Numbered from the stretch's first letter, positions 8,949 through 63,269 are shown. The stretch: 64,000 nt of DNA from Octopus sinensis (GCF_006345805.1 NC_043010.1:59768001-59832000); one strand, 5' to 3'. Program-made: numbers and translations. The notes: generated from the sequence alone by a model not told the origin.

Positions 8949-9099
8949 AAATATAGCCAACCGATTGAGGTGACATCTTATGGAGACAACAGACCATCCT
9001 CTAACTATCCCACTGACACACTGACCAGTCGTAAGAGCAGTGGACAGTGCTGGAGTGAGCGGTCAAGTAGACAGTATGAAGAAATACCAGCAATGTCAG
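8949..9099 (+). CDS. PCDH: U1 exon 3 (cytoplasmic tail; alternative start 8946)
   Basis: tacagCAG tandem acceptor; KYSQPIEVTSYGDNRPSSNYPTDTLTSRKSSGQCWSERSSRQYEEIPAMS; phase-1 GTAAGG donor. Confidence 0.9.
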
Positions 9100-9185
9100 G
9101 TAAGGGTAGTTTAAACTAAGAGAATAACAAGGATAAATATAATATACAAAACTGACTCTATGTATTACCATTGTATATGTTTCAG

Positions 9186-9301
9186 CTATCTATGGTATGC
9201 AACAGGACCCCACAGCCAACACTGAGAAACTGCCCCAGGACAGATATGTGAAACCTCCAGAAAGACAACTCCCTGCTACACCTGATGTTATAAACAACTG
9301 A
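9186..9301 (+). CDS. PCDH: U1 terminal exon 4
   Basis: tttcag acceptor; (A)IYGMQQDPTANTEKLPQDRYVKPPERQLPATPDVINN*. Confidence 0.85.
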
Positions 9302-9459
9302 TCAGTTACAATTATTACTCACAAACTCCTAACCTTTCACATTATATAAATTTGTAGTGAATCTTTAAGTCTTCAAAATATATTAAGAATGAGTAATGAA
9401 TGTTTTATTTTAATATCACTTGAATCATTTTCTGCTGGATTGGACAATGTTTCATCTCA

Positions 9460-9506
<47 letters not shown>

Positions 9507-9537
9507 TCAAATTTGTGTAAATGTATATAGAATAATA

Positions 9538-9769
9538 TATCAGTTGAATATAGTTAAAACATGGTCTGATTTTTACGTTTTTTATTATGGTCCTTTAACA
9601 TTAAAAAATATTTTGTAATGCTCATAATGTTAAATTAGCATTTTCATATATATAGTGTATGAAAGTGCTAATTTAACTTTATGAGCATTACAAAATATTT
9701 TTTTAATGTTAAAGTACCATAATAAAAATTGTGAAAACTAGACCATGTTTTAACTTTGTTCAGCTGATA
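9538..9769. repeat. Long fold-back inverted repeat (~110-bp arms, short loop)
   Basis: tatcagttgaatatagttaaaacatggtc...ctcataatgttaaattagcattttcata pairs with tatgaaagtgctaatttaactttatgag...gaccatgttttaactttgttcagctgata. Confidence 0.85.
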
Positions 9770-10191
9770 CGGATATATTAAAATAGCAATAAGGAAGTTT
9801 GGCAATTGATAAGTAGTGTCTTGAATGTTTATGTTTAAATAGACAATCAGAAAATAATATGATGAAAAATTAATTATGTAAGGCATTTAAGAAACAAGAA
9901 ATGACTTTCTTAAGAAGACTATTGTCTTACAGCATTTAGACATTTTTTTAAACATTCCTTCTGTGTTTATAAGGACAACTGATGGTTTTTTAGAAATTAG
10001 GTCATAAAATATAAATTATTTCAAAATATCCTCATTTGTAAACATATTTATCAGTATTTTCCATTATGAATTTTGTGTTACATCATAAGTTAGTAAATGT
10101 ATTTACTAACAACAATAATGTTTTGTTAATGTAAGATCTATATGAAACACTGAAAGTATATATATATATATATACACACCAGTCTTTTTCT

Positions 10192-10323
10192 ACATCAGAC
10201 ATATTGGTGTTGTATAGACTTAACATGGCTGACTGTTAGTGGGGCTGATATTCTGTATTCTTTCTTTCTTCTTCTGTGTGAGGGGAAATAGTCTGAGTGA
10301 AACTGGAATAAGCATCACCCATC
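10192..10323 (+). promoter_or_regulatory. Conserved upstream blocks A+B of U2
   Basis: Homologous to 2261-2392. Confidence 0.65.
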
Positions 10324-13315: not shown

Positions 13316-15685
13316 ATGGCAGATATGTTTGTAGCAATTTGCATACTTCTCTCTTGTATGCATTGTAGTCTGTGTAAAGACATTACCTTTCATGTAAAGG
13401 AGGAGAATGTTCCTTACTATTTCATAGGTGACATTGCTACTGAAACTCTTGTCACCAAAACTCTTTTAACTGACGATGCCAGTCTCTTCACATTTAATCA
13501 ACTTAAACAGAAAGGAACTCAACTGTTTAATGTAACAAAAGAAGGAAAATTGTACACAGCTCAAACTTTGGATGCCGAAGTTTTGTGTCGATATAACACT
13601 GAATGTTACAGAACTGTGAAAGTTGCTATCCATAAACATAAAACATTTATGAAGATCTTAAAGATTAAAGTCATAATAGAAGACACCAATGACCACCAAC
13701 CTGAGTTTCCTCAGAAAGAAATCACTCTACATTTTAGGGAAGCAGATGGTAAAGGTATGAAGAAGGCTATACCTAATGCTGTTGATAAAGATGTTGGATA
13801 TCAGAACAGGCTGATTAATTATAAATTGAGAAATAATTCTGTGAAATTTGTGCTGTCTGTTTCTAAAAGAGTGGATGGAATATCCAGATTGGAAATTGTT
13901 TTGAATGAAAAATTAGACAGAGAGCAAAAAGATATCTATCATGTTCAGGTATCAGCTACAGATGGGGGATCCCCACCTAAAGAATGTGTCTTAAAGATAA
14001 CAATAATAGTAGAAGATGAGAATGATAATTTACCTCTTTTCTCAAATGACCTCTACAATATTTCTATTCAGAATACTTATCAAATATACAAACCGATATT
14101 AACTCCTTCTGCAAATGATAAGGATAGTGGTAAAAATGGGATGATTTCTTATTATTTTAGTCCAATGACTTCTGATATTGACAAAACATACTTTGGCCTG
14201 AATAAAACAACTGGAGATATATTTCTAATTGATGAAATTGATATTGATGAAGAGAGGATTATGTATACACTTTATATAGAAGCCAGGGATGGAGGTAATC
14301 CACCCCTGAGTTCCATAGCAGCTGTCCATGTAAATGTTATCAACGAACACAACAAACCCCCAAATATTGATGTGAACTTTATTTCTACACAGAATCACAA
14401 CACAGCTACCATTCTGGAAGACATCAAAGTTGGTAGTTTCATTGCTTATGTGATGGTCACGGACAATGATGTTGGACACAATGGAGAGGTGAACTGTCAT
14501 ATCAAAGACGACACATTCAAACTACAGTCAATGGGATCGAAGGAATATAAAATAGTTCTAAAGAAAGCAGTAGACAGAGAGACACAGGAACATTATCACT
14601 TTACTGTGTCGTGTGAAGATAAAGGATTACCTGCTCTGAAAACTGATAAAGATCTGTCAATCCAAGTGTTGGATGTGAATGATGTAGAACCACACTTTAC
14701 GAAAGACACATTCAAGTTCCTTACCTATGAGAATGACAAAGCTAATTTCCCTATTGGCTTTATCAATGCTACAGACCCAGATATTGGTAAGGGAGGTGAA
14801 TTGTCTTATTCTCTGAGAAATAAACAGCAATATCGTCTGCCATTCCAGATTATCAACTCTGGCTTTATTTCAACAAACCAGTCTTTAGACAGAGAACACA
14901 GAGATTTCTATGAGTTTGAGGTTTTTGTGAAAGACAATGGAAGCCCATCTCTGAATAACACAGTGAATGTTGAAGTGGAAGTATTGGATAGAAATGATAA
15001 TGCTCCATATTTTACATTTCCTAGTGTTGACCATTTCACTCTTAATGTCCACTATCATCCGCAAAGTAAGAACGACATCACAGTTCTGAAAGCATCTGAT
15101 ATAGACAGTCACATGAATGCTTTTCTCAGGTATGAAATCGTTTCAGGTAACGAGAGACAGTTATTTAAACTGGATTCGTTCACTGGTGTGTTATCTTACT
15201 CTCGCACAGTTTACCAAAATGATGCCGGATCATATGAGCTTGAGTTTGTTGTGAAAGACAGTGGTACTCCAGTTCTGTCAGCAACAACTAGTGTGTCTTT
15301 GGCACTGACTGTTAGTAACAAGACGTCACCAATGTTCACAGCTGTGCACCTACCAAGTGATAACACCATAGATGCGACATTGTTGATTATCATTGTAGTA
15401 GCAGCTGTGATAGTATCTATAGCTATTGTGGTTTCTATAACCCTGTGTATTGTGAGATGTAACAATGTGAGAAATAGCTCATCTGAAAGAACAGCAGAAG
15501 AGAAACAGGCATACCAATGTCGCAATGAGATGAGACAGTTGATCTATCAAGGTAACAACAGTGTACCTGTGATGTCAGGCAATCGAGGAGAGATGTCAGA
15601 CAGATACGGTCATTCGAGGAGCCATTATTATCCTGAAGACTGGAAGACATCAACAATGAGTCGGACACTTCAGAAGTCTACAAAG
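13316..15685 (+). CDS. PCDH: Protocadherin U2 large exon
   Basis: ORF MADMFVAICILLSCMHCSLC..., six EC repeats plus TM; phase-0 donor AAG/GTAAAT. Joining to 18864-19014 and 19386-19504 gives ~879 aa in frame. Confidence 0.95.
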
Positions 15686-17082: not shown

Positions 17083-17087
<5 letters not shown>

Positions 17088-17128
<41 letters not shown>

Positions 17129-17225
17129 GTATATGTATGTATGTATATATATGTATATATATGTTTGTATATATATGTTTGTATATATATGTATATATGT
17201 ATGTGTATATATGTATGTATATATA

Positions 17226-17256
<31 letters not shown>

Positions 17257-17503
17257 GAATGTATATATATGTATGTATATATATATATATGTATATATGT
17301 ATGTATATATATATATATATGTATATATATATGTATATGTATATATATATATATGTATATGTATATGTATATGTATATATATATGTATATGTATATATAT
17401 ATGTATATGTATATATATATATATGTATATGTATATATATATGTATATGTATATATATGTATATGTATATATATATGTATATATATATATATATATGTAT
17501 ATG

Positions 17504-17552
<49 letters not shown>

Positions 17553-17618
17553 GTATATTTATATATATGTATATATATATGTATATTTATATATATGTAT
17601 ATATATATGTATATATAT

Positions 17619-17650
<32 letters not shown>

Positions 17651-17707
17651 TTATATATGTGTATATATATATATATATGTATATTTATATATATGTATAT
17701 ATATATG

Positions 17708-17771
<64 letters not shown>

Positions 17772-17850
17772 TATATCATCATCATCGTTTAACGTCCGCT
17801 TTCCATTGTATATATATATGTGTATATGTATATATATATATATGTGTGTG

Positions 17851-17890
<40 letters not shown>

Positions 17891-17910
17891 CTTGTATACA
17901 CACATACTGT

Positions 17911-18863: not shown

Positions 18864-19014
18864 AAATACAGTCAACCCATTGAGGTGACATCTTATGGAG
18901 ACAACAGACCGTCTTCTAACTATCCCACCGACACATTGACCAGTCGTAAGAGCAGTGGACAGTGCTGGAGTGAGCGGTCAAGTAGACAGTATGAAGAAAT
19001 ACCAGCAATGTCAG
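18864..19014 (+). CDS. PCDH: U2 exon 3
   Basis: catcag acceptor; same 50-codon tail peptide ending QYEEIPAMS; GTAAGA donor. Confidence 0.9.
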
Positions 19015-19385: not shown

Positions 19386-19504
19386 GACATTACACTATCC
19401 AATCAGATATGTCAGCCAATAATGAAAGACAACTATACCAAGAGAGATATGTAAAAAACCCTGAGAGACAGTTGCCTTCACCACCAGATGTTGTAAATCA
19501 GTGA
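19386..19504 (+). CDS. PCDH: U2 terminal exon 4
   Basis: tttcag acceptor; (G)HYTIQSDMSANNERQLYQERYVKNPERQLPSPPDVVNQ*. Confidence 0.85.
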
Positions 19505-29487: not shown

Positions 29488-29623
29488 CAAAACTATAGTC
29501 AGCCAGTAGCAGTGACATCATTTGAATACCCCCCTGGCATGTCGAGCAATCATAAAGATAGTGAACAGTGCTGGAGTGAAGGGTCAAGTACACACTATGA
29601 AGAAATACCAGCAGTATCATCAG
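29488..29623 (+). CDS. PCDH: U3 exon 3 (divergent)
   Basis: ttcacag acceptor; QNYSQPVAVTSFEYPPGMSSNHKDSEQCWSEGSSTHYEEIPAVSS; phase-1 GTAGAG donor. Confidence 0.85.
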
Positions 29624-29715: not shown

Positions 29716-29840
29716 GGCTTTGTGGTATACAGGCCAACACATCGACATGTAGTGAGGAGCTGCAAGAGAACCAAGAGAGGTATGTAACACCATCAGAAAA
29801 ACAATTGCCATCAACACCAGATGTTATAATACTTAACTGA
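29716..29840 (+). CDS. PCDH: U3 terminal exon 4
   Basis: ttttgcag acceptor; (G)LCGIQANTSTCSEELQENQERYVTPSEKQLPSTPDVIILN*. Confidence 0.85.
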
Positions 29841-33387: not shown

Positions 33388-35766
33388 ATGCTTTCACTGA
33401 CAAAAGAAAATATGTTGAGCTTTTCAGTTTTGCTAACTTTCTTCTTCCCCTGCTGTCTCAGTTTTAATTTAATCTACAAGGTAAAGGAAGAGACAAACAC
33501 ACATACATTTGTTGGAGACATTACAGCTGATCCACAGTTTCAAGACGTAGTGCCATCTGGAGATATTGGTCATATTACGTTTAATCAACTGAAACTTAAA
33601 GGAACACAGATATTTAATGTTTCTGAAAGTGGGAAAATCTACACAATACAAACACTGGATGCTGAAGCCCTCTGTACTTTTGAAAAGGAATGTTTCCAGG
33701 AAGTTAAAGTTGCTGTTCACAAAGGAAAAAACTTCTTGAAAATCTTGAAAATTAAAGTAGTTATAGAAGACATCAATGACCACCAACCTGAGTTTCCAGA
33801 GAAAGAAATTACTATACGTTTCAGAGAAGGTGATGGTAAAGGAATGAAAAAGTCCATTCCAAATGCCATTGACAAAGATGTTGGAGTTTTAAATAGTGTA
33901 ATTAATTATCATTTAAAGGACAACAAGGAAATGTTTTCATTGTTAGTTTCTAAAAGAGCTGATGGAATATCTCGACTAGAGATTGTTCTAGAAAGTAAAT
34001 TAAATAGAGAAGTGAAAGATCACTATAGTCTGGAAGTCATTGCTAAGGATGGAGGAAGTCCATCCAAAGAAAGTATTTTAAAGGTAAACATAGAAGTTCA
34101 AGATGAAAATGATAATTTACCTGTATTTCAACAAAAACTATACAACATTTCTGTAAAGAAAACACAAGACAAAAACAAAGCTGTTGTTATTGTATCAGCT
34201 GAAGATCTGGATATCGGTAAAAATGGAGAGATTTCTTATTATTTTAGTCCAAAGACACTCGAGAAAAACAAACAATATTTCAAGTTAGATAAAATCACAG
34301 GAGAAATATTGTTCTCAAAAAATACAAACTTTAATGAAGAAACATTTAAATTATATATTGAAGCCAGAGATGGGGGCAACCCACCTCTCAGTTCCATAGC
34401 AACTGTTATGGTAAATGTCATCAACCAGCAGAACAATCCCCCAAATATTGATGTGAACTTTATTTCTACACAGAATCACAACACAGCTACCATTCTGGAA
34501 GACATCAAAGTTGGTAGTTTCATTGCTTATGTGATGGTCACTGACAACGATGTTGGACACAATGGAGAGGTGAACTGTCATATCAAAGATGACACATTCA
34601 AACTACAGTCAATGGGATCGAAGGAATATAAAATAGTTCTAAAGAAAGCAGTAGACAGAGAGACACGGGAACATTATCACTTTACTGTGTCGTGTGAAGA
34701 TAAAGGATTACCTGCTCTGAAAACGGATAAAGATCTGTCAATCCAAGTGTTGGATGTGAATGATGTAGAGCCACACTTTACGAAAGACACATTCAAGTTC
34801 CTTACCTATGAGAATGACAAAGCTAATTTCCCTATTGGCTTTATCAATGCTACAGACCCAGATATTGGTAAGGGAGGTGAATTGTCTTATTCTCTGAGAA
34901 ATAAACAGCAATATCGTCTGCCATTCCAGATTATCAACTCTGGCTTTATTTCAACAAACCAGTCTTTAGACAGAGAACACAGAGATTTCTATGAGTTTGA
35001 GGTTTTTGTGAAAGACAATGGAAGCCCATCTCTGAATAACACAGTGAATGTTGAAGTGGAAGTATTGGATAGAAATGATAATGCTCCATATTTTACATTT
35101 CCTAGTGTTGACCCTTTCACTCTTAATGTCCACTATCATCCGCAAAGTAAGAACGACATCACAGTTCTGAAAGCATCTGATATAGACAGTCACATGAATG
35201 CTTTTCTCAGGTATGAAATCGTTTCAGGTAACGAGAGACAGTTATTTAAACTGGATTCATTCACTGGTGTGTTATCTTACTCTCGCACAGTTTACCAAAA
35301 TGATGCCGGATCATATGAGCTTGAGTTTGTTGTGAAAGACAGTGGTACTCCAGTTCTGTCAGCAACAACTAGTGTGTCTTTGACACTGACTGTTAGTAAC
35401 AAGACGTCACCAATGTTCACAGCTGTGCACCTACCAAGTGATAACACAATAGATGCGACATTGTTGATTATCATTGTAGTAGCAGCTGTGATAGTATCTA
35501 TAGCTATTGTGGTTTCTATAACCCTGTGTATTGTGAGATGTAACAATGTGAGAAATAGCTCATCTGAAAGAACAGCAGAAGAGAAACAGGCATACCAATG
35601 TCGCAATGAGATGAGACAGTTGATCTATCAAGGTAACAACAGTGTACCTGTGATGTCAGGTAATCGAGGAGAGATGTCAGACAGATACGGTCATTCGAGG
35701 AGCCATTACTATCCTGAAGACTGGAAGACATCGACAATGAGCAGAACACTCCAGAAGTCTACAAAG
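33388..35766 (+). CDS. PCDH: Protocadherin U4 large exon (start may be ATG 33412)
   Basis: Acceptor tttcag at 33364; signal peptide MLSFSVLLTFFFPCCLS; six EC plus TM; phase-0 donor AAG/GTAAGT. Joins 36548-36698 and 38021-38142 in frame. Confidence 0.95.
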
Positions 35767-36547
35767 GTAAGTATTAAACATTCTGTAATTAATTTCTTAA
35801 TATTTAGACATTACCTGAAGTAAATAGTAACTCTGTATCATCCAACACCAGATTAATTATAGAACAATTATAATAATATAATTATATAGATGATACTGCA
35901 GAACAATTTTCATTTCAATCTATTTTCTTGAAGCTTCTGTTTAATAACAAAAAATTATGTGACCTGAATATTCTTCTAGAAATAAGATCTTAATCTTTTA
36001 TTCTTTCAGTTAATTTAGAAATTCCCTTACATTATAGCGAATTACATCATCTGTGTATGATGAAAGAAGCTGTAAGTTCTGAGTGATGTAGTTATAGCCT
36101 GTGTTGGGAGTTATTGAGGAAGGTTCTGCGTATCCTGATTCTCATTGCAAACCAATGTATTCCACTTTCAAACCGTTTGTACACATGAACGATTTTAGTT
36201 TATTCAAATTTCCTTTTGTTGTCTTTTCTGTTTAGTCTTAAATAATGGATAATGTGTTGGTCCTAAAACAGAGTCCAGTGTTTTATGCTTCATGCATGTT
36301 GACTATGTGTCAAACTATTACAATCTCTAAAATGTACCTGGTTAACCACATGTGTGATTTATAAAGTTAGGTTTTGTTGATGAAGGTGTCATATCTTGTG
36401 GTTGTTCATCCCAGATGTAATCAACATTTGATTCTGACTGTTCATATTATATAACCTTGTTAGATTCCCATCAGAGATGATGTAAACTATTCCTGGCAGG
36501 TGACAATGCATTTATGCTTATATAATGTTCTGTTTTGTCACCAGCAG

Positions 36548-36698
36548 AAATACAGTCAACCCATTGAGGTGACATCTTATGGAGACAACAGACCGTCTTC
36601 TCACTATCCCACTGACACATTGACCAGTCGTAAGAGCAGTGGACAGTGCTGGAGTGAGCGGTCAAGCAGACAGTATGAAGAAATACCAGCAATGTCAG
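36548..36698 (+). CDS. PCDH: U4 exon 3 (alternative start 36545)
   Basis: ccagCAG acceptor; tail peptide ending QYEEIPAMS; GTAAGG donor. Confidence 0.9.
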
Positions 36699-38020: not shown

Positions 38021-38142
38021 GAATCTATGGTGGTGCCCCACCGGATGTATCAAGCACCAGTGAGAGAGACCATTACCAAGACAGATATGTGAAACCTCCA
38101 GAGAGACAGTTACCTTCAACACCAGATGTTGTTGTCAGTTAA
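38021..38142 (+). CDS. PCDH: U4 terminal exon 4
   Basis: tttcag acceptor; (G)IYGGAPPDVSSTSERDHYQDRYVKPPERQLPSTPDVVVS*. Confidence 0.85.
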
Positions 38143-44328: not shown

Positions 44329-46999
44329 ATGTTAAAGATGTGGAGAATTCTGTGTCTGATGTCTTTACTAATCCAGTGCTATCACTGTCTGAACCTCACT
44401 TACCGGGTGAAAGAAGAAAACAGTCCCATTACATATATAGGTTCTATTGCATCCAGTAAACAATTTTTGAAGACCTTTTCATCAGAAGAACTGAAAGTAA
44501 TTACATTTAATCAACTCCAACAAAAGGAGGCAGAATTATTTAATGTCACAACAACAGGGAAACTCTACACTCTTCAAACAATAGATGCTGAATCACTGTG
44601 TAGATATAATAAGGAGTGTTCGAGAATTATTAAAGTAGCTGTTCACAAACAGAAAACTTTTGTAAGAATTTTAAAAGTCAAAATAATCATAGAAGACATC
44701 AATGACCACCAACCTGAGTTTCCAGACAAGGAAATAACTTTACATTTTGAAGAAGGAGATGGCAAAGGAATGAAAAAGTCCATTGCAAATGCCATTGACA
44801 AAGATGTTGGTTTTAAAAACAGATTAATTCATTACAAATTATCGCAATCTAATCACTCGTTTTCTCTGGAAGTATTCGAACATGCTGATGGTGTATCATA
44901 CCTTCAGATTGTTCTAGAAGAAAAGTTAGACAGAGAGGTAAAAGAATTATACAATGTAGAAGTTATTGCAGAAGATGGAGGAACTCCAGCCAAGCAGAGT
45001 GTGTTAAATGTTAAGATTGTAGTTGACGATGAAAATGATAATCGACCTGTTTTTTCAAAGAGAATATATAATGTGTCAGTAGCAAAAACACATAAAACCA
45101 ACATACCGGTCGTCATAGTGTCAGCACAGGATTCTGACAGTGGGGACAATAGGAAAATATCGTATCATTTTAGTCCAATGGAGTTGAACCGCGTAGACGC
45201 AGGGCCAGGGGGTAAGATGAAGACGAGTTTAGAAGTACAGTGTTGAAGAAGAGAAGAAGAGCAGAGATGGAGGAACTCAGCAAGCAGAGTGTGTTAAATG
45301 TTAAGATTGTAGTTGACGATGAAAATGATAATCGACCTGTTTTTTCAAAGAGAATATATAATGTGTCAGTAGCAAAAACACATAAAACCAACATACCGGT
45401 CGTCATAGTGTCAGCACAGGATTCTGACAGTGGGGACAATAGGAAAATATCGTATCATTTTAGTCCAATGACATCAGAAATGGATAGTAGACATTTCCAG
45501 TTGAAACCAGACACTGGGGAGATATTTCTAACAGAAACCTCAAGTCTACAAGAAAAAGTTATTTATGAGTTATTTATAGAGGCTAGAGATGGAGGGAAAC
45601 CTCCTCTCAGCTCCATAGCAACTGTTATGGTAAATGTCATCAACCAACACAACAATCCTCCAAATATTGATGTGAATTTTATTTCTGCACAGAATCACAA
45701 CACAGCTACCATTCTGGAAGACATCAAAGTTGGTAGTTTCATTGCTTATGTGATGGTCACTGACAATGATGTTGGACACAATGGCCAGGTGAACTGTCAT
45801 ATCAAAGACGACACATTCAAACTACAGTCAATGGGATCGAAGGAATATAAAAATAGTTCTAAAGAAAGCAGTAGTAGACAGAGAGACACAGGAACATATC
45901 ACTTTACTGTGTCGTGTGAAGATAAAGGTTACCTGCTCTGAAAACTGATAAAGATCTGTCAATCCAAGTGTTGGATGTGATGATGTAGAACCACACTTTA
46001 CGAAAGACACATTCAAGTTCCTTACCTATGAGAATGACAAAGCTAATTTCCCTATTGGCTTTATCAATGCCCACAGACCCAGATATTGGTAAGGGAGGTG
46101 AATTGTCTTATCTCTCTGAGAAATAAACAGCAATATCGTCTGCCATTCCAGATTATCAACTCTGGCTTTATTTCAACGAACGAACCAGTCTTTAGACAGA
46201 GAACACACAGAGATTTCTATGAGTTTGAGGTTTTGTGAAAGACAATGGAAGCCCATCTCTGAATAACACAGTGAATGTTGAAGTGGAAGTATTGGATAGA
46301 AATGATAATGCTCCATATTTTACATTTCCTAGTGTTGACCCTTTCACTCTATATGTCCACTATCATCCGCAAAGTAAGAACGACATCACAGTTCTGAAAG
46401 CATCTGATATAGACAGTCACATGAATGCTTTTCTCAGGTATGATGAATCGTTCAGGTAACGAGAGACAGTTATTCAAACTGGACTCGTTCAACTGTGTGT
46501 TATCTTACTCTCGTACAGTTACCAAAATGATGCTGGATCATATGAGCTTGAGTTTGTTGTGAAAGACAGTGGTACTCCAGTTCTGTCAGCAAAACAACTA
46601 GTGTGTCTTTGACACTGACTGTTAGTAACAAGACGTCACCAATGTTCACAGCTGTGCACCTACCAAGTGATAACACAATAGATGCGACATTGTTGATTAT
46701 CATTGTAGTAGCAGCTGTGATAGTATCTATAGCTATTGTGGTTTCTATAACCCGTGTGTATTGTGAGATGTAAAAATGAGTAGAAATAGCTCATCTGAAA
46801 GAACAGCAGAAGAGAAACAGGCATACCAATGTCGCAAGTGAGATGAGACAGTTGATCTATCAAGGTAACAACAGTGGTACTGTGATGTCAGGTTAATCGA
46901 GGAGAGATGTCAGACAGATATGGTCATTCAAGGAGCCATTACTATCCTGAAGACTGGAAGACGTCGACAATGAACAGAACACTCCAGAAGTCAACAAGG
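44329..46999 (+). pseudogene. PCDH: Protocadherin U5 large exon, apparently disrupted; pseudogene or (more likely) uncorrected assembly errors
   Basis: Intact signal peptide and EC1-EC2 from ATG 44329; ~210-bp duplication (44968-45180 and 45261-45470) with an 80-nt spacer; many 1-4 nt indels from ~45850 to ~46995; donor GTAAGT at 47000. Confidence 0.6.
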
Positions 47000-47830
47000 G
47001 TAAGTATTATTTTAGGTAAATATGTTGCAAACTTATTTTTATGTTTGAGTAATTTAGATTGTGGAATTATTGCTGTATGTTAAGTAAATCTGATACACTA
47101 AGACATGCATTAGAAGTGAATAGCAGACCGCGATAGATGGTCTCACTTTGCAAAACATCAAAAACAATGCTTTGTATCTTTACATTTCTGTTTCACATGC
47201 TATTTTCAAATATCTGTGGAGCCTGCTTTGAGGTTTTTTATCCCGTCATGGCTTTTAAAGTATACACCAAATAGTTCCAGGTGTCAGTGTAATTACATAG
47301 ACACTGCTCATTATGTAGTGGCCCTGCTACTCTTTGAGATCCCTGCAGAATTGAACACGATAAAATGGCTAGCATGATTTTAATAATCTTTTTGGAACAT
47401 CCAGAGAGATGCATTTTCAACATTATTACAATATTCTTTCCAAATGTTTACATTGTAAACATTTGAAGAGTTCTCATAAATATGAAGTTTGGAATTACAT
47501 CAAGGTTTACATAAAATATCTTTAACTCATATTCTGGGTTAATCATGTATTAGTCGTTAATGCAACTACCATATTCTATTATTAATCATTTGAGGTAATA
47601 TTTTCAAAATTAAACATATCACCATATATTTCTCCAGAACGAAACTACGATAATTTATTCAATATCAGATAAATACAGTATAATGAGTGATCATAACAAT
47701 GATTATTATGATTGTCATATGCTGCTGCTTTCTATAAATTCAGTGAAAGTAGGATGAGTTATTCATTAGCATTGTCAATCGTGAATGATATGTTTACATT
47801 AACCCTTGTTACTATTATACTTTACAGCAG

Positions 47831-47981
47831 AAATACAGTCAACCGATTGAGGTGACATCTTATGGAGACAACAGACCATCTTCTAACTATCCCACTGACA
47901 CATTGACCAGTCGTAAGAGCAGTGGACAGTGCTGGAGTGAGCGGTCAAGCAGACAGTATGAAGAAATACCAGCAATGTCAG
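47831..47981 (+). CDS. PCDH: U5 exon 3 (alternative start 47828)
   Basis: tacagCAG acceptor; intact tail peptide; GTAGGA donor. Confidence 0.85.
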
Positions 47982-48151: not shown

Positions 48152-48270
48152 GGATCTATGGTAGCCAACAGGATACACCAGTGAACCCCGAAAGACAACA
48201 GTATCAAGACAGATATGTGAAACCTCCAGAGAGACAGTTACCTTCAACACCAGATGTCATTACTAACTGA
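48152..48270 (+). CDS. PCDH: U5 terminal exon 4
   Basis: ttttgcag acceptor; (G)IYGSQQDTPVNPERQQYQDRYVKPPERQLPSTPDVITN*. Confidence 0.85.
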
Positions 48271-50723: not shown

Positions 50724-53073
50724 ATGAAGATGGTCTTAATAGCGATATGGATATTACAGTCTCTGCTCCACTGTTCTGTTTCTAAAGACATTGTTTACCA
50801 TGTGAAAGAAGAGAACAGTCCTGTTATCAACATAGGAGACATTACTGCTGATTCCCAGTTAAAGGACACTGCATTATTATCGTTCAGTCAGTTGCAACAG
50901 AAGGGAACACAGCTGTTTAATGTGACCACCACTGGGAAGATATACACCACACAAACACTGGATGCTGAGTCTCTGTGTACTTTTGAGAAAGAATGCTTTC
51001 ACACAATTAAGGTAGCCGTTCATAAAGCAGGTAAATTTATAAAGATATTGAAAATTAAGGTGATTATAGAAGACATCAATGACCATCAACCAGAGTTTCC
51101 TGTGGAAGATATAATTCTGCAATATTCTGAAACTGAAAGTAAAGGCACAAAACGGTCAATTCCCAATGCCATTGACAAAGATGTTGGATTGACAGAACAG
51201 ATTAGTGAATTATGAATTGAAGGGAAGTAACCAACAGTTTTCTTTGTCCACATTCAAAAGAGCAGACGGAGTATCTTTTCTTGAAATTATATTACAAGGA
51301 AAGTTGGATAGGGAGACGAAAGACAGCTATAATATAGAAGTGATTGCTAAGGATGGAGGAACTCCACCCAAACAGGGTGTCTTAAATGTGCACATAACTG
51401 TGAAAGATGAAAATGATAACAGACCAATTTTCTCTGAGAAAACATACAATGTCTCTATACAAAATAACCATGAAAAGAATAGACCAGTTGTTGTAATGAT
51501 GGCAGAAGACTCTGATATTGGAGAAAATGGTAAAGTTTCATATTATATCAGCCCAACAACGTCAACAGATTCAAAAGATAATTTTATTATAAATGAGAAA
51601 ACTGGAGAAATATTCTTAGCCAAAGAATCACAATTTGACAAAATGAAATCATTTAAATTATACATTGAAGCCAGAGATGGGGGCAACCCTCCTCTCAGTT
51701 CCATAGCCACGGTTATGGTAAATGTTATCAACCAGCAGAACAATCACCCAAATATTGATGTGAACTTTATTTCTACACAGAATCACAACACAGCCACCAT
51801 TCTGGAAGACATCAAAGTTGGTAGTTTCATTGCTTATGTGATGGTCACTGACAATGATGTTGGACACAATGGACAGGTGAACTGTCATATCAAAGACAAC
51901 ACATTCAAACTACAGTCAATGGGATCGAAGGAATATAAAATAGTTCTAAAGAAAGCAGTAGACAGAGAGACACAGGAACATTATCACTTTACTGTGTCGT
52001 GTGAAGATAAAGGATTACCTGCTCTGAAAACTGATAAAGATCTGTCAATTCAAGTGTTAGATGTGAATGATGTAGAACCACACTTTACGAAAGACACATT
52101 CAAGTTCCTTACCTATGAGAATGACAAAGCTAATTTCCCTATTGGCTTTATCAATGCTACAGACCCAGATATTGGTAAGGGAGGTGAATTGTCTTATTCT
52201 CTGAGAAATAAACAGCAATATCGTCTGCCATTCCAGATTATCAACTCTGGCTTTATTTCAACAAACCAGTCTTTAGACAGAGAACACAGAGATTTCTATG
52301 AGTTTGAGGTTTTTGTGAAAGACAATGGAAGCCCATCTCTGAATAACACAGTGAATGTTGAAGTGGAAGTATTGGATAGAAATGATAATGCTCCATATTT
52401 TACATTTCCTAGTGTTGACCATTTCACTCTTAATGTCCACTATCATCCGCAAAGTAAGAACGACATCACAGTTCTGAAAGCATCTGATATAGACAGTCAC
52501 ATGAATGCTTTTCTCAGGTACGAAATCGTTTCAGGTAACGAGAGACAGTTATTTAAACTGGACTCTTTCACTGGTGTGTTATCTTACTCTCGCACAGTTT
52601 ACCAAAATGATGCCGGATCATATGAGCTTGAGTTTGTTGTGAAAGACAGTGGTACTCCAGTTCTGTCAGCAACAACTAGTGTGTCTTTGACACTGACTGT
52701 TAGTAACAAGACGTCACCAATGTTCACAGCTGTGCACCTACCAAGTGATAACACAATAGATGCGACATTGTTGATTATCATTGTAGTAGCAGCTGTGATA
52801 GTATCTATAGCTATTGTGGTTTCTATAACCCTGTGTATTGTGAGATGTAACAATGTGAGAAATAGCTCATCTGAAAGAACAGCAGAAGAGAAACAGGCAT
52901 ACCAATGTCGCAATGAGATGAGACAGTTGATCTATCAAGGTAACAACAGTGTACCTGTGATGTCAGGTAATCGAGGAGAGATGACAGACAGATATGGTCA
53001 TTCGAGGAGCCATTACTATCCAGATGACTGGAAGATGTCTACAATGAACAGAACACTTCAGAAATCTACACGG
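50724..53073 (+). CDS. PCDH: Protocadherin U6 large exon with one apparent +1 frameshift at ~51191
   Basis: Acceptor tttcag at 50695; MKMVLIAIWILQSLLHCSVS; ORFs 50724-51215 and 51205-53154 join if the extra G in ggattGacagaac (U7: ggattacagaac) is removed; phase-0 donor CGG/GTAAGT. Confidence 0.85.
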
Positions 53074-55018: not shown

Positions 55019-55155
55019 AGTGTATCTGAAAAAATATACATCTTTTAATTGCTTCAAGTAATATACGGATAATTCAATATACTCAAAATACTTAATTACT
55101 CAAATTTATTCTATAACATTACAGTATAACTGGTTGCTGTTTTATTTTACAGCAG

Positions 55156-55306
55156 AAATACAGTCAACCGATTGAGGTGACATCTTATGGAGACAACAGA
55201 CCATCTTCTAACTATCCCACTGACACATTGACCAGTCGTAAGAGCAGTGGACAGTGCTGGAGTGAGCGGTCAAGCAGACAGTATGAAGAAATACCAGCAA
55301 TGTCAG
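55156..55306 (+). CDS. PCDH: U6 exon 3 (alternative start 55153)
   Basis: Identical peptide to U5 exon 3; GTAGGA donor. Confidence 0.9.
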
Positions 55307-55476
55307 GTAGGATAACAATCCATTCTCATTTAATATTACAGTAATTCATTACTAATTATTGTACTAATTATTGTTGTATACTCTGAGATGTAATTACTTC
55401 TGTCTGTGTGTCCCTAGAGTATATCTGATGATGGTGATTGTTTCAGACATTGCTACATTAAAACAATGTTTTGCAG

Positions 55477-55595
55477 GGATCTATGGTAGCCAACAGGATA
55501 CACCAGTGAACCCCGAAAGGCAACAGTATCAAGACAGATATGTGAAACCTCCAGAGAGACAGTTACCTTCAACACCAGATGTCATTACTAACTGA
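55477..55595 (+). CDS. PCDH: U6 terminal exon 4
   Basis: Same peptide as U5 exon 4. Confidence 0.85.
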
Positions 55596-56184
55596 CCACT
55601 GGTCATTTAACTAAATATTGACCCTTTACAATAATATTTCAAATAACCACCAACTCCCTTCACTCACACAAACTAATATAAATATAATAACTTCTCTCAT
55701 TACCTCACAATTACAATATTATATTCCAACCTATGATAGAATATATGGACACTAACAGTGAAGTCAGCAACATTTCAAACCACACACACACACACACACA
55801 CTTAATGTTTTATATACGCTCCTCTTTTCTCTAATATTCTCAGTTAGGTGATTTTTATATTTCCCAAATATCTCTGGAATTAAATTAGAATACGTTTAAA
55901 ATATATTTCTTTATTTTTTACAACAGTGTTATTAAAATCTAACACTTAGGAAATTATATTTAAAAATGGTACCAAAATAAACCTGCCTGAAAATTAGAAT
56001 ATCCCTTCTCTATTTGTTCCTGCATCCTCCATTATAGGTTGGGTGTATATTTAGGTCAGACACATCTTAACCAGAACTGTTCTATATTAACATCATTTGT
56101 TAGTAATATATTTACCAATATCAGTGATGTTTTGTTAATATGAGATCCGTATGAAACACTGAATATATATATATATATCTATGC

Positions 56185-58465: not shown

Positions 58466-60814
58466 ATGAAGATGGTCTTAATAGCGATATGGATATTACA
58501 GTCTCTGCTTCACTGTTCTGTCTCTAAAGACATTGTTTACCATGTGAAAGAAGAGAACAGTCCTGTTATCAACATAGGAGACATTACTGCTGATTCCCAG
58601 TTAAAGGACACTGCATTATTATCGTTCAGTCAGTTGCAACAGAAGGGAACACAGCTGTTTAATGTGACCACCACTGGGAAGATATACACCACACAAACAC
58701 TGGATGCTGAGTCTCTGTGTACTTTTGAGAAAGAATGCTTTCACACAATTAAGGTAGCCGTTCATAAAGCAGGTAAATTTATAAAGATATTGAAAATTAA
58801 GGTGATTATAGAAGACATCAATGACCATCAACCAGAGTTTCCTGTGGAAGAAATTCAATTAACATTTGGAGAAGGAGAAAGAAACGGTATGAAAAAGTCC
58901 ATCCCCAATGCCATTGACAAAGATGTTGGATTACAGAACAGATTAGTGAATTATGAATTGAAGGGAAATAACCAACAGTTTTCTTTGTCCACATTCAAAA
59001 GAGCAGACGGAGTATCATTTCTTGAAATTATATTAGAAGGAAAGTTAGACAGAGAGACGAAAGACAGCTATAATATAGAAGTGATTGCTAAGGATGGAGG
59101 AACTCCACCCAAACAGGGTGTCTTAAATGTGCACATAACTGTGAAAGATGAAAATGATAACAGACCAATTTTCTCTGAGAAAACATACAATGTCTCTATA
59201 CAAAATAACCATCAAAGAAATATACCAGTTGTTGTAATGATGGCAAAAGATTCTGACATTGGAGAAAATGGTAAAGTTTCATATTATATCAGCCCAACAA
59301 CATCAACAGAATCAAAAGATAATTTTATTATAAATGAGAAAACTGGAGAAATATTCTTAAACAAAGAATCACAATTTGACAAAATGAAATCATTTAAATT
59401 ATACATTGAAGCCAGAGATGGTGGTAACTCCCCTCTCAGTTCCATAGCAACGGTTATGGTAAATGTCATAAATGAACACAACAATCCCCCAAATATTGAT
59501 GTGAACTTTATTTCTACACAGAATCACAACACAGCTACCATTCTGGAAGACATCAAAGTTGGTAGTTTCATTGCTTATGTGATGGTCACTGACAATGATG
59601 TTGGACACAATGGACAGGTGAACTGTCATATCAAAGATGACACATTCAAACTACAGTCAATGGGATCAAAGGAATATAAAATAGTTCTAAAGAAAGCAGT
59701 GGACAGAGAGACACAGGAACATTATCACTTTACTGTGTCGTGTGAAGATAAAGGATTACCTGCTCTGAAAACTGATAAAGATCTGTCAATCCAAGTGTTG
59801 GATGTGAATGATGTAGAACCACACTTTACGAAAGACACATTCAAGTTCCTTACCTATGAGAATGACAAAGCTAATTTCCCTATTGGCTTTATCAATGCTA
59901 CAGACCCAGATATTGGTAAGGGAGGTGAATTGTCTTATTCTCTGAGAAATAAACAGCAATATCGTCTGCCATTCCAGATTATCAACTCTGGCTTTATTTC
60001 AACAAACCAGTCTTTAGACAGAGAACACAGAGATTTCTATGAGTTTGAGGTTTTTGTGAAAGACAATGGAAGCCCATCTCTGAATAACACAGTGAATGTT
60101 GAAGTGGAAGTATTGGATAGAAATGATAATGCTCCATATTTTACATTTCCTAGTGTTGACCCTTTCACTCTTAATGTCCACTATCATCCGCAAAGTAAGA
60201 ACGACATCACAGTTCTGAAAGCATCTGATATAGACAGTCACATGAATGCTTTTCTCAGGTACGAAATCGTTTCAGGTAACGAGAGACAGTTATTCAAACT
60301 CGACTCATTCACCGGTGTGTTGTCTTACTCTCGCACAGTTTACCAAAATGATGCCGGATCATATGAGCTTGAGTTTGTTGTGAAAGACAGTGGCACTCCA
60401 GTTCTGTCAGCAACAACTAGTGTGTCTTTGACACTGACTGTTAGTAACAAGACGTCACCAATGTTCACAGCTGTGCACCTACCAAGTGATAACACAATAG
60501 ATGCGACATTGTTGATTATCATTGTAGTAGCAGCTGTGATAGTATCTATAGCTATTGTGGTTTCTATAACCCTGTGTATTGTGAGATGTAACAATGTGAG
60601 AAATAGCTCATCTGAAAGAACAGCAGAAGAGAAACAGGCATACCAATGTCGCAATGAGATGAGACAGTTGATCTATCAAGGTAACAACAGTGTACCTGTG
60701 ATGTCCGGTAATCGAGGAGAGATGACAGACAGATATGGTCATTCGAGGAGCCATTACTATCCAGATGACTGGAAGATGTCTACAATGAACAGAACACTTC
60801 AGAAATCTACACGG
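58466..60814 (+). CDS. PCDH: Protocadherin U7 large exon
   Basis: Acceptor ttttcag at 58437; ATG 58466; six EC plus TM; phase-0 donor CGG/GTAAGT. Joining to 62830-62980 and 63151-63269 gives ~872 aa in frame. Confidence 0.95.
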
Positions 60815-61125
60815 GTAAGTATTATTTGGAATATACATATTGTAAGTTTGTCTTCGTGTTGTAATAATTTCACTGCTGTAAATATTACTTGGTGACATAT
60901 ATCTGATAAATTTTCCTCTCAGAATTGTGTATCGTGTGTTTCGTATGTGATTTACTTGAAGACACTTTGTATAACCCAACACCATAGGCAGTAAATTGGT
61001 CAGAATGTGGCCATAGATATATAGCTTGGCAGTAGATTGGTGCAGTGGGGAATATGTATCTCTTAAATGACTTGTGTTAATTAGTTACACCTTTTTATGC
61101 TAAAAGATGACTTTCTTTATTCGTT

Positions 61126-61447
61126 CCTGACTTCCGTGCAAGTGGCATGTAGGAGGCACCATTCGAGCGGGATCATTACCAGCATCGCCTTACTGGCACC
61201 TGTGCCCTTAGTATATGTAAAAAATTCAAGCGAGCTTGTTGCCAGTACCGCCTGACTGGCTCCCATGCCGGTGGCACATAAAGGCACCCACTACACTCTT
61301 GGAGTGGTTGGCATTAGGAAGGGCATCCAAGTGTAGGAATTCTCCCAGATCAAGACTGGAGCCGGTGCAGCCACCTGGTTTGCCAGCCCACAGTCAAACC
61401 ACCCATGCTGGCAAGGAAAGCGGATGTTAAACAATGATGATGATGAT
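61126..61447 (+). mobile_element. SINE-like insertion with (GAT)n tail, specific to U7
   Basis: ...ttggagtggttggcattaggaagggcatcc...cccatgctggcaaggaaagcggatgttaaacaatgatgatg; absent at the homologous U6 site (~53385). Confidence 0.8.
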
Positions 61448-61534
61448 GATGATATAAGCATCCTAGAATTGCCAGAATCAGTAGATGAAATGCCCTGTTG
61501 TATTTATTCTGACTTCTTACCTTTTTATCCTTTG

Positions 61535-62692
61535 AATCCACCTACATTTTTGGTGACCACTGCAGTGTGGGACCAGAACCACTTGTCTGCCTTCACTAAA
61601 TTATCGTTATTCGCTTCAAGCAATATATGGGCAGTCATAAACGTTTGTGCATTTATATTTGGTATTGTGGAGATGTTGATTAGTCTATCTTTCAACAATA
61701 CACCAAACTTATCATATAATAATAATAATGAAATTATTGTATGCAGAGCTGAGGTGCACCACAACATGTCAAAAGTGCATATAAAACACTTAACCCATGG
61801 AATTTAAACCTGTCAGTCTGGAGGCCACATGTTTGTTATTACATAATTATAAAGGGTAGTATGTAGGCCACATGTTTGTTATTACGTAATTAGAAAGAGT
61901 GTATGACATCCATTCGTGGGTTACATGGTCTTTGCGAGAAGGTGTTGAGACGAGCTGAAACACCTTCGATCTTCCACTGCATACTTCATTCATCCAGAAC
62001 TTAACAACTATCTCCAGCACTTCAAACCACATCAATTCTAAGACTCTGTGGAAATATGTGAGGTGCTATGACATTATCTTCATTACTAACCAGCCTTAAA
62101 ACTCACAATTGCTGGAAACGGAATGTGCATTGCTCTTGCAACATCAGAAAGTAACAACATAGTCATCTGCCATTTCTCCTGTGAGACTTCTGACTTGGTG
62201 AAAGTTTTTTGCATCAGAGAGGAACCAAAGTACACTGTATTTGTGAGGATTTTTAACCTCGTTAAATAACCTCTTGGCACAGGTCAAATGATTTTCTTGG
62301 TTCTTTGGAGACAAGAATTAGCCTCTCCTCAGTACATAGGACAGGTGTCAAATGTGCTTGTGCACCTCAGTTCTGAGAGTCCATTCCAATGCTTGAATTT
62401 CCTTTACCATGGCCTCCTTTACTGGTTTTCTGGGATCATAATCAATAATGTTCTGAATCCATTGGATGAACTGCAGTGTCTTTCTAAAGTCTAAACATTT
62501 AGAAGAATTTAGTTCTCTTTAATACACTTCAAAAATTCTTGCTAGAGGCTTCCAATTCTACACAAACTTTGAGTACAAAAGATCTTGCAGCATTTTACAA
62601 AGTTGGTAATATCTAAATTGCTGTGTTCCTCACTTATGTCAACAATAACTGCCTGTCTTTTTTTTTCATTTCTTTAGCATTTTATCTGACAT
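61535..62692 (-). mobile_element. Second copy of the decayed Tc1/mariner transposase
   Basis: Near-identical to 53860-55018. Confidence 0.7.
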
Positions 62693-62829
62693 AGTGTATC
62701 TGAAAAAATATACATCTTTTAATTGCTTCAAGTAATATACGGATAATTCAATATACTCAAAATACTTAATTACTCAAATTTATTCTATAACATTACAGTA
62801 TAACTGGTTGCTGTTTTATTTTACAGCAG

Positions 62830-62980
62830 AAATACAGTCAACCGATTGAGGTGACATCTTATGGAGACAACAGACCATCTTCTAACTATCCCACTGACAC
62901 ATTGACCAGTCGTAAGAGCAGTGGACAGTGCTGGAGTGAGCGGTCAAGCAGACAGTATGAAGAAATACCAGCAATGTCAG
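62830..62980 (+). CDS. PCDH: U7 exon 3 (alternative start 62827)
   Basis: Identical to U6 exon 3. Confidence 0.9.
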
Positions 62981-63150
62981 GTAGGATAACAATCCATTCT
63001 CATTTAATATTACAGTAATTCATTACTAATTATTGTACTAATTATTGTTGTATACTCTGAGATGTAATTAGTTCTGTCTGTGTGTCCGTAGAGTATTTCT
63101 GATGATGGTGATTGTTTCAGACATTGCTACATTAAAACAATGTTTTGCAG

Positions 63151-63269
63151 GGATCTATGGTAGCCAACAGGATACACCAGTGAACCCCGAAAGGCAACAG
63201 TATCAAGACAGATATGTGAAACCTCCAGAGAGACAGTTACCTTCAACACCAGATGTCATTACTAACTGA
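63151..63269 (+). CDS. PCDH: U7 terminal exon 4
   Basis: Identical peptide to U5 and U6 exon 4. Confidence 0.85.

Follow-up and report, generated by a model that had tools for sequence, protein, structure and literature searches.

YEEIP and class I proline motifs in the tails of octopod protocadherins as putative Src-family docking sites

The tandem protocadherin genes in a stretch of the Octopus sinensis genome (GCF_006345805.1, NC_043010.1:59768001-59832000; 64,000 nucleotides, hereafter the window) encode cytoplasmic tails that carry the pentapeptide YEEIP and, further downstream, a proline motif of the form (R/K)QLPxxP. We find that YEEIP is the conservation maximum of the cytoplasmic domain across octopod protocadherins and that selection acts on the peptide, while the proline motif marks the subfamily to which the window genes belong. 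Judged from sequence, docking of a Src-family kinase, or of a closely related group-I Src homology 2 (SH2) domain, would be the best single explanation of these features, a reading that we hold with middling confidence.

The genes are known and carry annotation; no earlier description of the tail motifs seems to exist. We found no literature report on protocadherins together with YEEI, or on cephalopod protocadherins together with SH2 domains, in a search that lay outside Albertin 2015 and Wang & Ragsdale 2017. The tail motifs are also absent from the octopus-specific motif list (EC1, EC5, EC6, transmembrane [TM] and [RK][VI]xF) in Styfhals 2019, which follows Albertin 2015. Styfhals 2019 reports a lack of vertebrate-like intracellular motifs, the 2022 genome papers do not discuss the tails, and Albertin 2022 makes no functional claim. 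Cephalopod protocadherins have independently expanded to 168-288 genes, with 168 in O. bimaculoides, 220 in E. scolopes and 288 in D. pealeii, and the module would be a Cas/FAK-style docking site for SH2 and SH3 domains in an invertebrate protocadherin family. Src-family docking is a specific hypothesis that would tie recognition to cytoskeletal control, and a five-residue conservation maximum across the octopod family offers a concrete and cheap experimental handle.

Tail motifs of the window protocadherins

Eight tandem protocadherin units (U0 to U7) lie head-to-tail in the window, all on the + strand, each with three coding exons. A six-frame scan of the window returned exactly seven copies of YEEIP, all on the + strand (at 9075, 18990, 29596, 36674, 47957, 55282 and 62956), and exactly eight matches to [RK]QLP[SA][TP]P (at 1686, 9263, 19466, 29799, 38104, 48232, 55557 and 63231), with no stray copy of either outside the tail exons or on the minus strand. 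As the original prediction had it, YEEIP lies in every penultimate exon of the window (7/7), every last exon reads RYVxxxE(R/K)QLP(S/A)(T/P)PDV (8/8), the divergent U3 reads THYEEIPAV, and YVKP or YVTP is found in all units but U2, which has YVKN. The exons that it numbered 3 and 4 are really coding exons 2 and 3, NCBI models joining exon 1 directly to the YEEIP exon. The span of 8949-63269 that it gave runs from the U1 YEEIP exon, counted from the second AG of its tandem acceptor, to the U7 stop codon; of the seven units with tails within it, U5 and U6 are damaged, and an eighth RQLP exon (1603-1724) lies upstream. The tail exons are listed below, where a slash within a splice site marks the exon boundary and every last-exon product is followed by a stop codon.

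1603..1724, + strand: U0 last coding exon; RQLPSTP at 1686-1706; acceptor tatttcag/GA; product ...RYVKPPERQLPSTPDVVVS; upstream exons outside the window
8946..9099, + strand: U1 coding exon 2; QKYSQPIEVTS...SSRQYEEIPAMS; YEEIP at 9075-9089; CAG/CAG tandem acceptor; TCAG/gtaagg donor
9186..9301, + strand: U1 coding exon 3; RQLPATP at 9263-9283; product ...RYVKPPERQLPATPDVINN
18864..19014, + strand: U2 coding exon 2; YEEIP at 18990-19004; single CAG acceptor, hence no leading Gln
19386..19504, + strand: U2 coding exon 3; RQLPSPP at 19466-19486; YVKN, YxxP lost; product ...RYVKNPERQLPSPPDVVNQ
29488..29623, + strand: U3 coding exon 2, divergent; YEEIP at 29596-29610; product ...SEQCWSEGSSTHYEEIPAVSS
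29716..29840, + strand: U3 coding exon 3; KQLPSTP at 29799-29819; product ...RYVTPSEKQLPSTPDVIILN
36545..36698, + strand: U4 coding exon 2; YEEIP at 36674-36688
38021..38142, + strand: U4 coding exon 3; RQLPSTP at 38104-38124; product ...RYVKPPERQLPSTPDVVVS
47828..47981, + strand: U5 coding exon 2, intact; YEEIP at 47957-47971
48152..48270, + strand: U5 coding exon 3, intact; RQLPSTP at 48232-48252; product RQLPSTPDVITN
55153..55306, + strand: U6 coding exon 2; YEEIP at 55282-55296
55477..55595, + strand: U6 coding exon 3; RQLPSTP at 55557-55577; product RQLPSTPDVITN
62827..62980, + strand: U7 coding exon 2; YEEIP at 62956-62970
63151..63269, + strand: U7 coding exon 3; RQLPSTP at 63231-63251; product RQLPSTPDVITN
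Peptide holding the PxxP motif: PPERQLPSTPDV

The window tails are about 165 residues long and have 8-12 tyrosines, among which YEEI provides the only Yxx[LIMVF]. The tail has two YxxP motifs (YSQP and YVKP or YVTP, the latter lost in U2), and the proline motif follows YEEIP at a spacing of 34-37 residues. All eight last exons fit the class I consensus R/K-x-L-P-x-x-P, with R/K, Leu and both Pro invariant. The residue at P+2, hydrophobic in an optimum of the RPLPPLP type, is T in seven copies and P in one; in the proven ligands it is I (FAK RALPSIP) or P (Cas RPLPSPP). The claim that the tails combine a perfect SH2 ligand with a class I SH3 ligand holds only at the level of consensus matches, the proline motif being close to proven Src SH3 ligands but not hydrophobic at P+2. 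A single-sequence AlphaFold2 model of the TM segment and tail, built with no alignment, shows two helices, the TM helix and a juxtamembrane one (residues 36-58); what follows is modeled as free of secondary structure, at a predicted local distance difference test (pLDDT) score of <50 over residues 61-161, which agrees with the idea of short linear motifs in a disordered tail.

Other candidate signals in the tail were rejected. The sequence does not fit immunoreceptor tyrosine-based inhibition or activation motifs, the residue at -2 being R, H, Q, L or P rather than I/V/L/S, and there is no second YxxL/I at the activation-motif spacing. The termini vary (VVS, INN, VNQ, ILN, ITN), which does not fit a C-terminal PDZ ligand. 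Scanning the tail against Pfam yielded no meaningful match, and PF28399 and PF28393, which are listed for the homologs, were rejected as tail domains, being faint ectodomain matches (Ig_CLSTN and Ig_Cad99C_N). The [RK][VI]xF motif for PP1 is absent from the window tails, and Phe itself is absent from four of the five intact ones. A WIRS-like motif (Phi-x-[ST]-F-x-x) occurs in U3 only (VTSFEY, 29530-29547; VTSYGD in the other units) and is probably due to chance.

Conservation of YEEIP across octopods

A full-length query returned 120 octopod protocadherins, ranging from 95% down to 49% identity; it was needed since a tail-only query, subject to a word prefilter, gave only 4 proteins. YEEIP is present in 74/120 of these tails and Y[ED][ED][ILVM] in 90/120. 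It is also found in tails that are otherwise unrecognizable as relatives of those in the window, such as ...GDMKHYEEIPGVSD, ...NLGLYEEIPR (at the stop codon) and ...DSGEYEEIPDSC. In a non-redundant set of 33 octopod tails less than 55% identical to one another, YEEIP is the top five-residue window of the entire cytoplasmic domain, both by fraction identical and by information content; the counts per position are Y 25/30, E 25/29, E 24/29, I 20/29 and P 23/30. Y[ED]E[ILV] was observed in 23/33 tails, compared to 0.18 expected from composition-preserving shuffles, and [RK]xLPxxP in 9/33, compared to 0.16; none of 2000 shuffles reached the observed count for either motif. Because the shuffles fall so far below the observed counts, neither motif can be put down to chance.

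Conservation within the window is less telling by itself: all seven YEEIP copies share the identical string TATGAAGAAATACCA, which holds a purine-rich GAAGAA a few codons from the donor. In seven divergent paralogs (L001-L007) from Octopus bimaculoides, O. sinensis and Octopus vulgaris, by contrast, the YEEIP codons differ (TAT/TAC, GAA/GAG, ATA/ATT, CCA/CCT), with 11 synonymous changes and 1 conservative E>D replacement. Since these paralogs encode YEEIP with different codons, selection acts on the peptide, and a cause purely at the level of nucleotides is ruled out. The locus of one protein (P0043) was not found in the assemblies. Coding exon 2 of U3 differs from that of the other units with a synonymous divergence (dS) of 0.75-0.84 and a nonsynonymous divergence (dN) of 0.23, yet its YEEIP codons are unchanged. 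YEEIP is thus kept in orthologs and in very divergent paralogs under purifying selection at the protein level, in support of the original prediction.

Constraint, distribution and loss of the proline motif

In the last 16 codons of the window genes, the residues R, Y, V, E, R/K, Q, L, P, P, D and V are retained although dS in the last exon is saturated, and the block's codons for Arg, Val, Glu, Gln, Leu (TTA/TTG/CTC) and Pro vary synonymously. Because these residues are invariant while their synonymous codons vary at saturated dS, the RQLPxxPDV block is evidently constrained at the protein level. Only the subfamily of the window genes, delimited by an identity of about 68% or more and including Argonauta, has the block, which gives no signal in a family-wide profile; RQLPxxP is conserved there across Octopus species and Argonauta and is absent at this position from other subfamilies.

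Class I motifs are found elsewhere in the tails of other octopod protocadherins. In a second subfamily, exon 1 closes with RRLPPVP, RKLPPVP or RRLPPLP, which precedes YDEIP by 48-49 residues, and in a third, KPLPAVP, KPLPALP or KPLPAIP stands 74-114 residues downstream of YEEL/YETLP. The tyrosine motif precedes PxxP in the window's subfamily, whereas in the RRLPPVP subfamily PxxP precedes YDEIP, as in Cas and FAK.

Two further groups of octopod tails were noted. A long-tail subfamily (P0085, P0111, P0112, P0114, P0117, P0118 and P0131) has an extra conserved C-terminal module, ...DVIDLKS...(W)NLPMRNSFTSY(A/T)KPLPAVPK, which is unrelated to the window's last exon. A lineage represented by P0036, P0320, P0322 and P0039 retains GYYEEIPAL and constitutes a natural separation-of-function variant, whose altered proline block is described below.

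Src-family docking as a proposed explanation of the tail motifs

The sequence pY-E-E-I is the library-derived optimum of Src-family SH2 domains. A high-affinity phosphopeptide with a pYEEI core comes from hamster polyomavirus middle-T, which shares the Y-E-E-I-P core with the octopus tail; the middle-T peptide is a viral or library-derived optimum, whereas the octopus motif is a putative phosphosite in an endogenous neural adhesion receptor family. SH2 recognition fits the octopus motif better than does a sorting signal, because positions +1, +2 and +3 are all held, whereas a sorting signal needs only Y and a hydrophobic residue.

In the docking model, each gene encodes a single-pass protocadherin whose tail, beyond the juxtamembrane helix, would be unstructured, tyrosine rich and built as a string of short linear motifs. 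The YEEIP tyrosine would be phosphorylated upon receptor engagement or clustering, and pYEEI would then dock a group-I SH2 domain, the best candidate being that of a Src-family kinase. In the window's subfamily, (R/K)QLPxxP could bind the same kinase through its SH3 domain, creating a bipartite ligand that would hold the kinase open in the manner of RALPSIP with pY397 in FAK and RPLPSPP with pYDYV in p130Cas. The docked kinase would phosphorylate the neighboring YxxP sites (KYSQP and RYVKP), which could in turn recruit Crk-, Nck- or Abl-type adaptors and thus couple adhesion to actin. We infer phosphorylation, the identity of the SH2 and SH3 partners, kinase activation and these downstream steps from the motifs. 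In another mollusk, Aplysia, neurons have canonical Src1 and Src2 at growth-cone edges, with regulation through a C-terminal tyrosine (PMC6727743).

A broader proposal, which we put forward tentatively and with considerable doubt, is that coleoid protocadherins are Cas-like transmembrane scaffolds in which each paralog would have its private "constant" signaling module, homogenized by gene conversion, with a Src-type pY core that was repositioned and SH3 ligands that were added, all serving one common output. The pY site may have changed place, closing coding exon 2 in octopods (YEEIP) and spanning the exon 1/2 junction in decapodiforms (YxEI), and class I SH3 ligands may have been added three separate times; homophilic recognition by any ectodomain may then be relayed to Src, to Crk/Abl and finally to actin.

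Several observations weigh against Src docking. At P+2 the window motif has T or P, which would be sub-optimal for Src SH3. Among the non-redundant tails with a Y motif, 15/23 lack any class I motif, so that the tandem SH2 and SH3 design of the original prediction is not general; moreover, in the P0036/P0320/P0322 lineage (O. vulgaris, O. sinensis and O. bimaculoides; also P0039), the tail reads RQLSLTP and RFLKP, having lost both PxxP and YxxP. Pro +4 is as conserved as the core, which SH2 recognition would not explain, and the order in the window, pY and then PxxP, is the reverse of that in FAK and Cas. Both consensus patterns are short and degenerate, and disorder of the tail is predicted from a single sequence.

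The remaining objection comes from relatives outside the octopods. Searching 1.84 billion representative proteins with a profile built from 22 diverse tails gave 28 matches, all of them cephalopod or cephalopod-like; there was no non-cephalopod match and hence no outgroup, so that a difference at the tyrosine reads as gain or loss alike. For comparison we used a fragment from Acanthosepion pharaonis (P0140) and transcript assemblies nearest to cuttlefish protocadherins; most decapodiform database entries are exon-1-only read-through calls that are unusable for tails. The alignment of the block is unambiguous, the octopod sequence being ...SSHADFGHGWSEGDSGEYEEIPD and the decapodiform-like ones ...SYHTDSGHGWSEGDTGHIDEMPD and ...SSHADSEHGWDKGNTAHREEMSD. 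At the position of the tyrosine, the residue found in these relatives is I (7), R (2) or S (1), compared to Y in 21/21 octopod sequences with the same anchor. The ancestral function of the block may thus have been independent of Tyr, the acidic-acidic-hydrophobic-Pro part being kept. The homologous site in P0140, P0147, P0171, P0176-P0178, P0204, P0206, P0238 and P0263 reads H-(I/R/S)-(D/E)-E-(M/V)-P.

In 10/15 spliced tails, the decapodiform-like proteins have Y(Q/E/R)EI(G/E/D) about 40 residues upstream, across the exon 1/2 junction; their exon 1 ends in ...(V/I)YQ/gt. Because class I motifs occur at three tail positions and YxEI occurs at a second position in the sister lineage, the comparison suggests selection for a type of motif rather than for a site. 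The contrast with decapodiforms (Tyr absent at the homologous site, YxEI nearby) amounts to a natural evolutionary experiment.

Alternative readers of the motifs

It is conceivable, if unlikely, that YEEI is a YxxPhi sorting signal, read in its unphosphorylated form by the mu subunit of AP-2 or another adaptor protein (AP) complex and controlling endocytosis or surface delivery, with phosphorylation serving only to switch sorting off. Like such signals, YEEI is cytoplasmic and pairs a Tyr with a bulky hydrophobic residue at +3; it is the sole Yxx[LIMVF] of the tail and lies within the predicted unstructured region. The surface delivery of vertebrate clustered protocadherins is controlled by their cytoplasmic domains, and dual SH2/AP-2 motifs are known in other receptors. 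However, YxxPhi signals need no conservation at the x positions or at +4, and mu2 is not known to favor acidic residues at +1 and +2, whereas in the octopus motif both Glu and the +4 Pro match Y and I in conservation. A sorting signal would also leave the recurrent class I proline motifs unexplained.

We assign a similarly low probability to a reader other than Src. This could be another SH2 domain with a pY-E-x-I/V preference (Fer/Fes, Syk/Shark-like, Tec or Shc), several SH2 classes accepting pYExI, or a Tyr-independent reader of the acidic-acidic-hydrophobic-Pro string, in which case the octopod Tyr would be a lineage-specific addition or irrelevant. In favor of a reader other than Src, DSGHGWSEGDTGH-x-(D/E)E(M/V)P is retained in the cuttlefish-like homologs, where I/R/S replaces Tyr, and Pro +4 is conserved. 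On the other hand, Tyr is the residue of the block held most firmly within octopods (25/30), the decapodiform-like tails have a separate YxEI nearby, and the closest match of the proline motifs is to proven Src SH3 ligands.

Still less probable is the possibility that (R/K)QLP(S/A)TP serves mainly as a proline-directed Ser/Thr phosphosite (PxTP, of the MAPK/CDK5 type) or as a phospho-dependent WW/Pin1 site, a role that would be compatible with SH3 binding and could gate it. PSTP, PATP, PTTP and PITP of the subfamily all fit Px[ST]P, and the Thr of PxTP is kept in 7/8 window copies; the LPSPP of U2 and P0038, however, is without the PxTP register, octopod tails show no enrichment of Px[ST]P (4/33, compared to 4.3 expected), and the invariant R/K, L and two Pro are the signature of an SH3 class I ligand. 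A primary role of RQLPSTP as a MAPK PxTP site was rejected, as it has no support at the level of the family.

That the motifs have no protein function, and owe their sameness across units to recent duplication, to gene conversion or to a constraint on the nucleotides, for instance a purine-rich GAAGAA splicing enhancer near the donor, is barely credible and, on the sequence comparisons, already largely refuted: the shared string of the seven window copies, a dS in the YEEIP exon and TM/juxtamembrane segment 3-5-fold below that of the ectodomain (indicating homogenization) and the gene conversion proposed for cephalopod protocadherin arrays (PMC9068888) would favor it, but the peptide is kept through the 11 synonymous changes in divergent paralogs, in U3 at a dS of ~0.8 and a dN of 0.23, and as the tail's conservation maximum in the non-redundant set, RQLPxxPDV is kept at saturated dS with synonymous variation, and an enhancer or gene-conversion artifact was rejected as the cause of YEEIP conservation on the synonymous-codon evidence.

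Comparison with known docking systems

A close parallel to the proposed Src docking module is p130Cas (BCAR1), in which RPLPSPP is a proven Src SH3 site that docks and activates Src together with a nearby pYDYV, and whose YxxP sites, once phosphorylated, recruit Crk or Nck (PMC2956669). As in the window tails, whose disorder is predicted, a class I proline motif lies near a tyrosine motif in an unstructured region with flanking YxxP sites (YSQP and YVKP in the window), and RQLPSPP of U2 is identical to RPLPSPP at 6/7 residues. The two differ in that p130Cas is a cytosolic adaptor with 15 YxxP, whereas the octopus tail belongs to a transmembrane adhesion receptor and has two; p130Cas has YDYV with PxxP first, whereas the octopus tail has YEEI with pY first, and its binding is predicted from sequence. 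In FAK, RALPSIP (368-374) is a proven Src SH3 site that acts with pY397 (PMC6528292). RQLPSTP is identical to it at 5/7 residues (R, L, P, S and P), and in both proteins the SH3 and SH2 sites, putative ones in the octopus, are tens of residues apart, with the order reversed in the octopus (at its spacing of 34-37). The tyrosine of FAK is autophosphorylated, whereas the octopus tail lacks a kinase domain.

Vertebrate clustered protocadherins are alike in having tandem arrays, variable ectodomains and a near-constant cytoplasmic module, but they share constant exons, whereas each octopus gene has its own tail exons, kept alike by homogenization. We detected no sequence similarity between the octopus and vertebrate tails, and neither the delta-protocadherin motifs CM1-3 nor the PP1 motif (RRVTF) in the former, the WIRS-like match being that of U3 only. 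Vertebrate clustered protocadherins are linked to non-receptor tyrosine kinases: Fyn was named as a Pcdh-alpha partner in an old report (cited in PMC6339937), and later literature names FAK/Pyk2. A 2020 review of protocadherin signaling describes inhibition of FAK/Pyk2 by vertebrate tails and mentions neither Fyn nor Src (PMC7339444); what vertebrate tails are known for is inhibition of FAK/Pyk2 rather than docking of Src via YEEI, and the suggestion that the octopus proteins are convergent with vertebrates is a weak one.

Probable segment-specific homogenization of the array

Divergence among the five intact units was estimated per segment by the method of Nei and Gojobori.

Ectodomain: dS 0.45-0.55; dN/dS ~0.3
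TM and juxtamembrane segment: dS 0.10-0.22
YEEIP exon: dS 0.07-0.27; 0.75-0.84 against U3
Last exon: dS 0.43 to >2, saturated

The TM/juxtamembrane segment is near-identical in all intact units, U3 included. This mosaic suggests segment-specific homogenization that would yield a de facto "constant region" without shared exons, and gene conversion has been proposed for cephalopod protocadherin arrays (PMC9068888). It would represent a second route, unlike the shared exons of vertebrates, to variable ectodomains with a constant tail.

The tail exons of U5 and U6 are intact despite a damaged exon 1. U5 (47794-48450) is 97.4% identical to U7 (62793-63449) over 657 bp, intron included; the U5 tail module either was recently overwritten by gene conversion or has been retained through use by neighboring transcripts. 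U6 (53853-55776) and U7 (61526-63450) are 99.5% identical over 1.9 kb that cover intron 1, the tail exons and the downstream region, indicating, at the sequence level, very recent duplication or conversion.

Gene structure and annotation

The genes are protocadherins, as had been predicted, and octopus tissues that express them are the optic lobe and axial nerve cord. Five large open reading frames (ORFs) match Pfam Cadherin (E values of 1e-60 to 1e-73, with five matched stretches each) and Cadherin_2; Cadherin_2 is N-terminal, cadherin repeats and one predicted TM helix are present, and the protein is encoded mostly by one large exon. The top homology matches are octopod protocadherins. U1-U4 are 99.9-100% identical to segments of the O. 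sinensis RefSeq model XP_029645048.2 (100% for U1 exon 1), and the U7 tail is identical to that of O. sinensis XP_029645059.1 (P0002). The first exons are as follows.

5125..7584, + strand: U1 exon 1; Pfam Cadherin 5.8e-72 and Cadherin_2; donor AGG/GTAAG, phase 0
13316..15685, + strand: U2 exon 1; Pfam Cadherin 1.2e-67; donor AAG/GTAAA
23318..25675, + strand: U3 exon 1; Pfam Cadherin 1.9e-60; donor AAG/GTAAG
33388..35766, + strand: U4 exon 1; Pfam Cadherin 3.2e-64; donor AAG/GTAAG
44329..46999, + strand: U5 exon 1 remnant, a decayed pseudogene; pieces in frames 2, 1, 3, 2 and 3 in a tblastn search with U7
50724..53073, + strand: U6 exon 1; one frame disruption near 51160-51224
58466..60814, + strand: U7 exon 1; Pfam Cadherin 1.6e-73; donor CGG/GTAAG

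Exon 1 (~2.4 kb) encodes the signal peptide, ectodomain, TM segment and about 100 juxtamembrane residues, and ends in AAG/GTAAG (phase 0). Coding exon 2 (136-154 nt) is preceded by a polypyrimidine tract and a CAG/CAG acceptor (phase 0), encodes (Q)KYSQPIEVTS...SSRQYEEIPAMS and ends with a TCAG/GTAAG donor (phase 1). The last exon (116-125 nt) has the acceptor ttt(c/g)cag/ and encodes ...RYVKPPERQLPSTPDVxxx up to the stop codon. The predicted splicing is upheld by NCBI models from O. sinensis, O. bimaculoides, O. vulgaris and Argonauta hians: short models (O. bimaculoides, O. sinensis and A. hians) run from exon 1 to the YEEIP exon to the RQLP exon, and a fused model of this very locus has the tail exons of all four of its units spliced exactly as predicted. 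Vertebrate-type shared constant exons are lacking: the two tail exons, with their splice sites and stop codon, are private to each unit, in agreement with PMC9068888.

Exon 1 of U5 has at least 5 frame changes and 57-70% identity to U7 by tblastn, with stop codons in its TM/juxtamembrane part. That of U6 (96% identity to U7 by tblastn) is split between frame 1 (residues 1-167) and frame 2 (residues 146-783), a disruption that could reflect either a pseudogene or an assembly error.

The acceptor before the YEEIP exon is a CAGCAG (NAGNAG) tandem at 8943-8948, 36542-36547, 47825-47830, 55150-55155 and 62824-62829; its counterpart in U3 is CAGCAA (29485-29490), and U2 has a single CAG. NCBI isoforms X1 and X2 differ by the one Gln of this tandem acceptor, and P0002 takes the distal AG. 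The model XP_029645048.2 (P0310) fuses U1-U4 (5125-38142) into a 3,535-aa "uncharacterized protein" in which the stop codons are spliced out. Comparable fused models are P0299 (4,439 aa), P0319 (2,561 aa, "dachsous-like") and P0172 (1,701 aa, "Fat 1-like"); they are probably artifacts of tandem-paralog annotation, which inflate protein lengths and mislead naming.

The window is AT rich, with a GC content of ~34%. Intron 1 of U2 contains an imperfect (TATA/TGTA)n microsatellite of ~865 bp (17083-17947), which explains why GC falls to 0.24 and why spurious "YIYIYI" ORFs turn up on either strand. No stray ORF of the window had a family match. Finally, 220-376 and 61292-61444 form an inverted match with 77% identity, probably an interspersed repeat.

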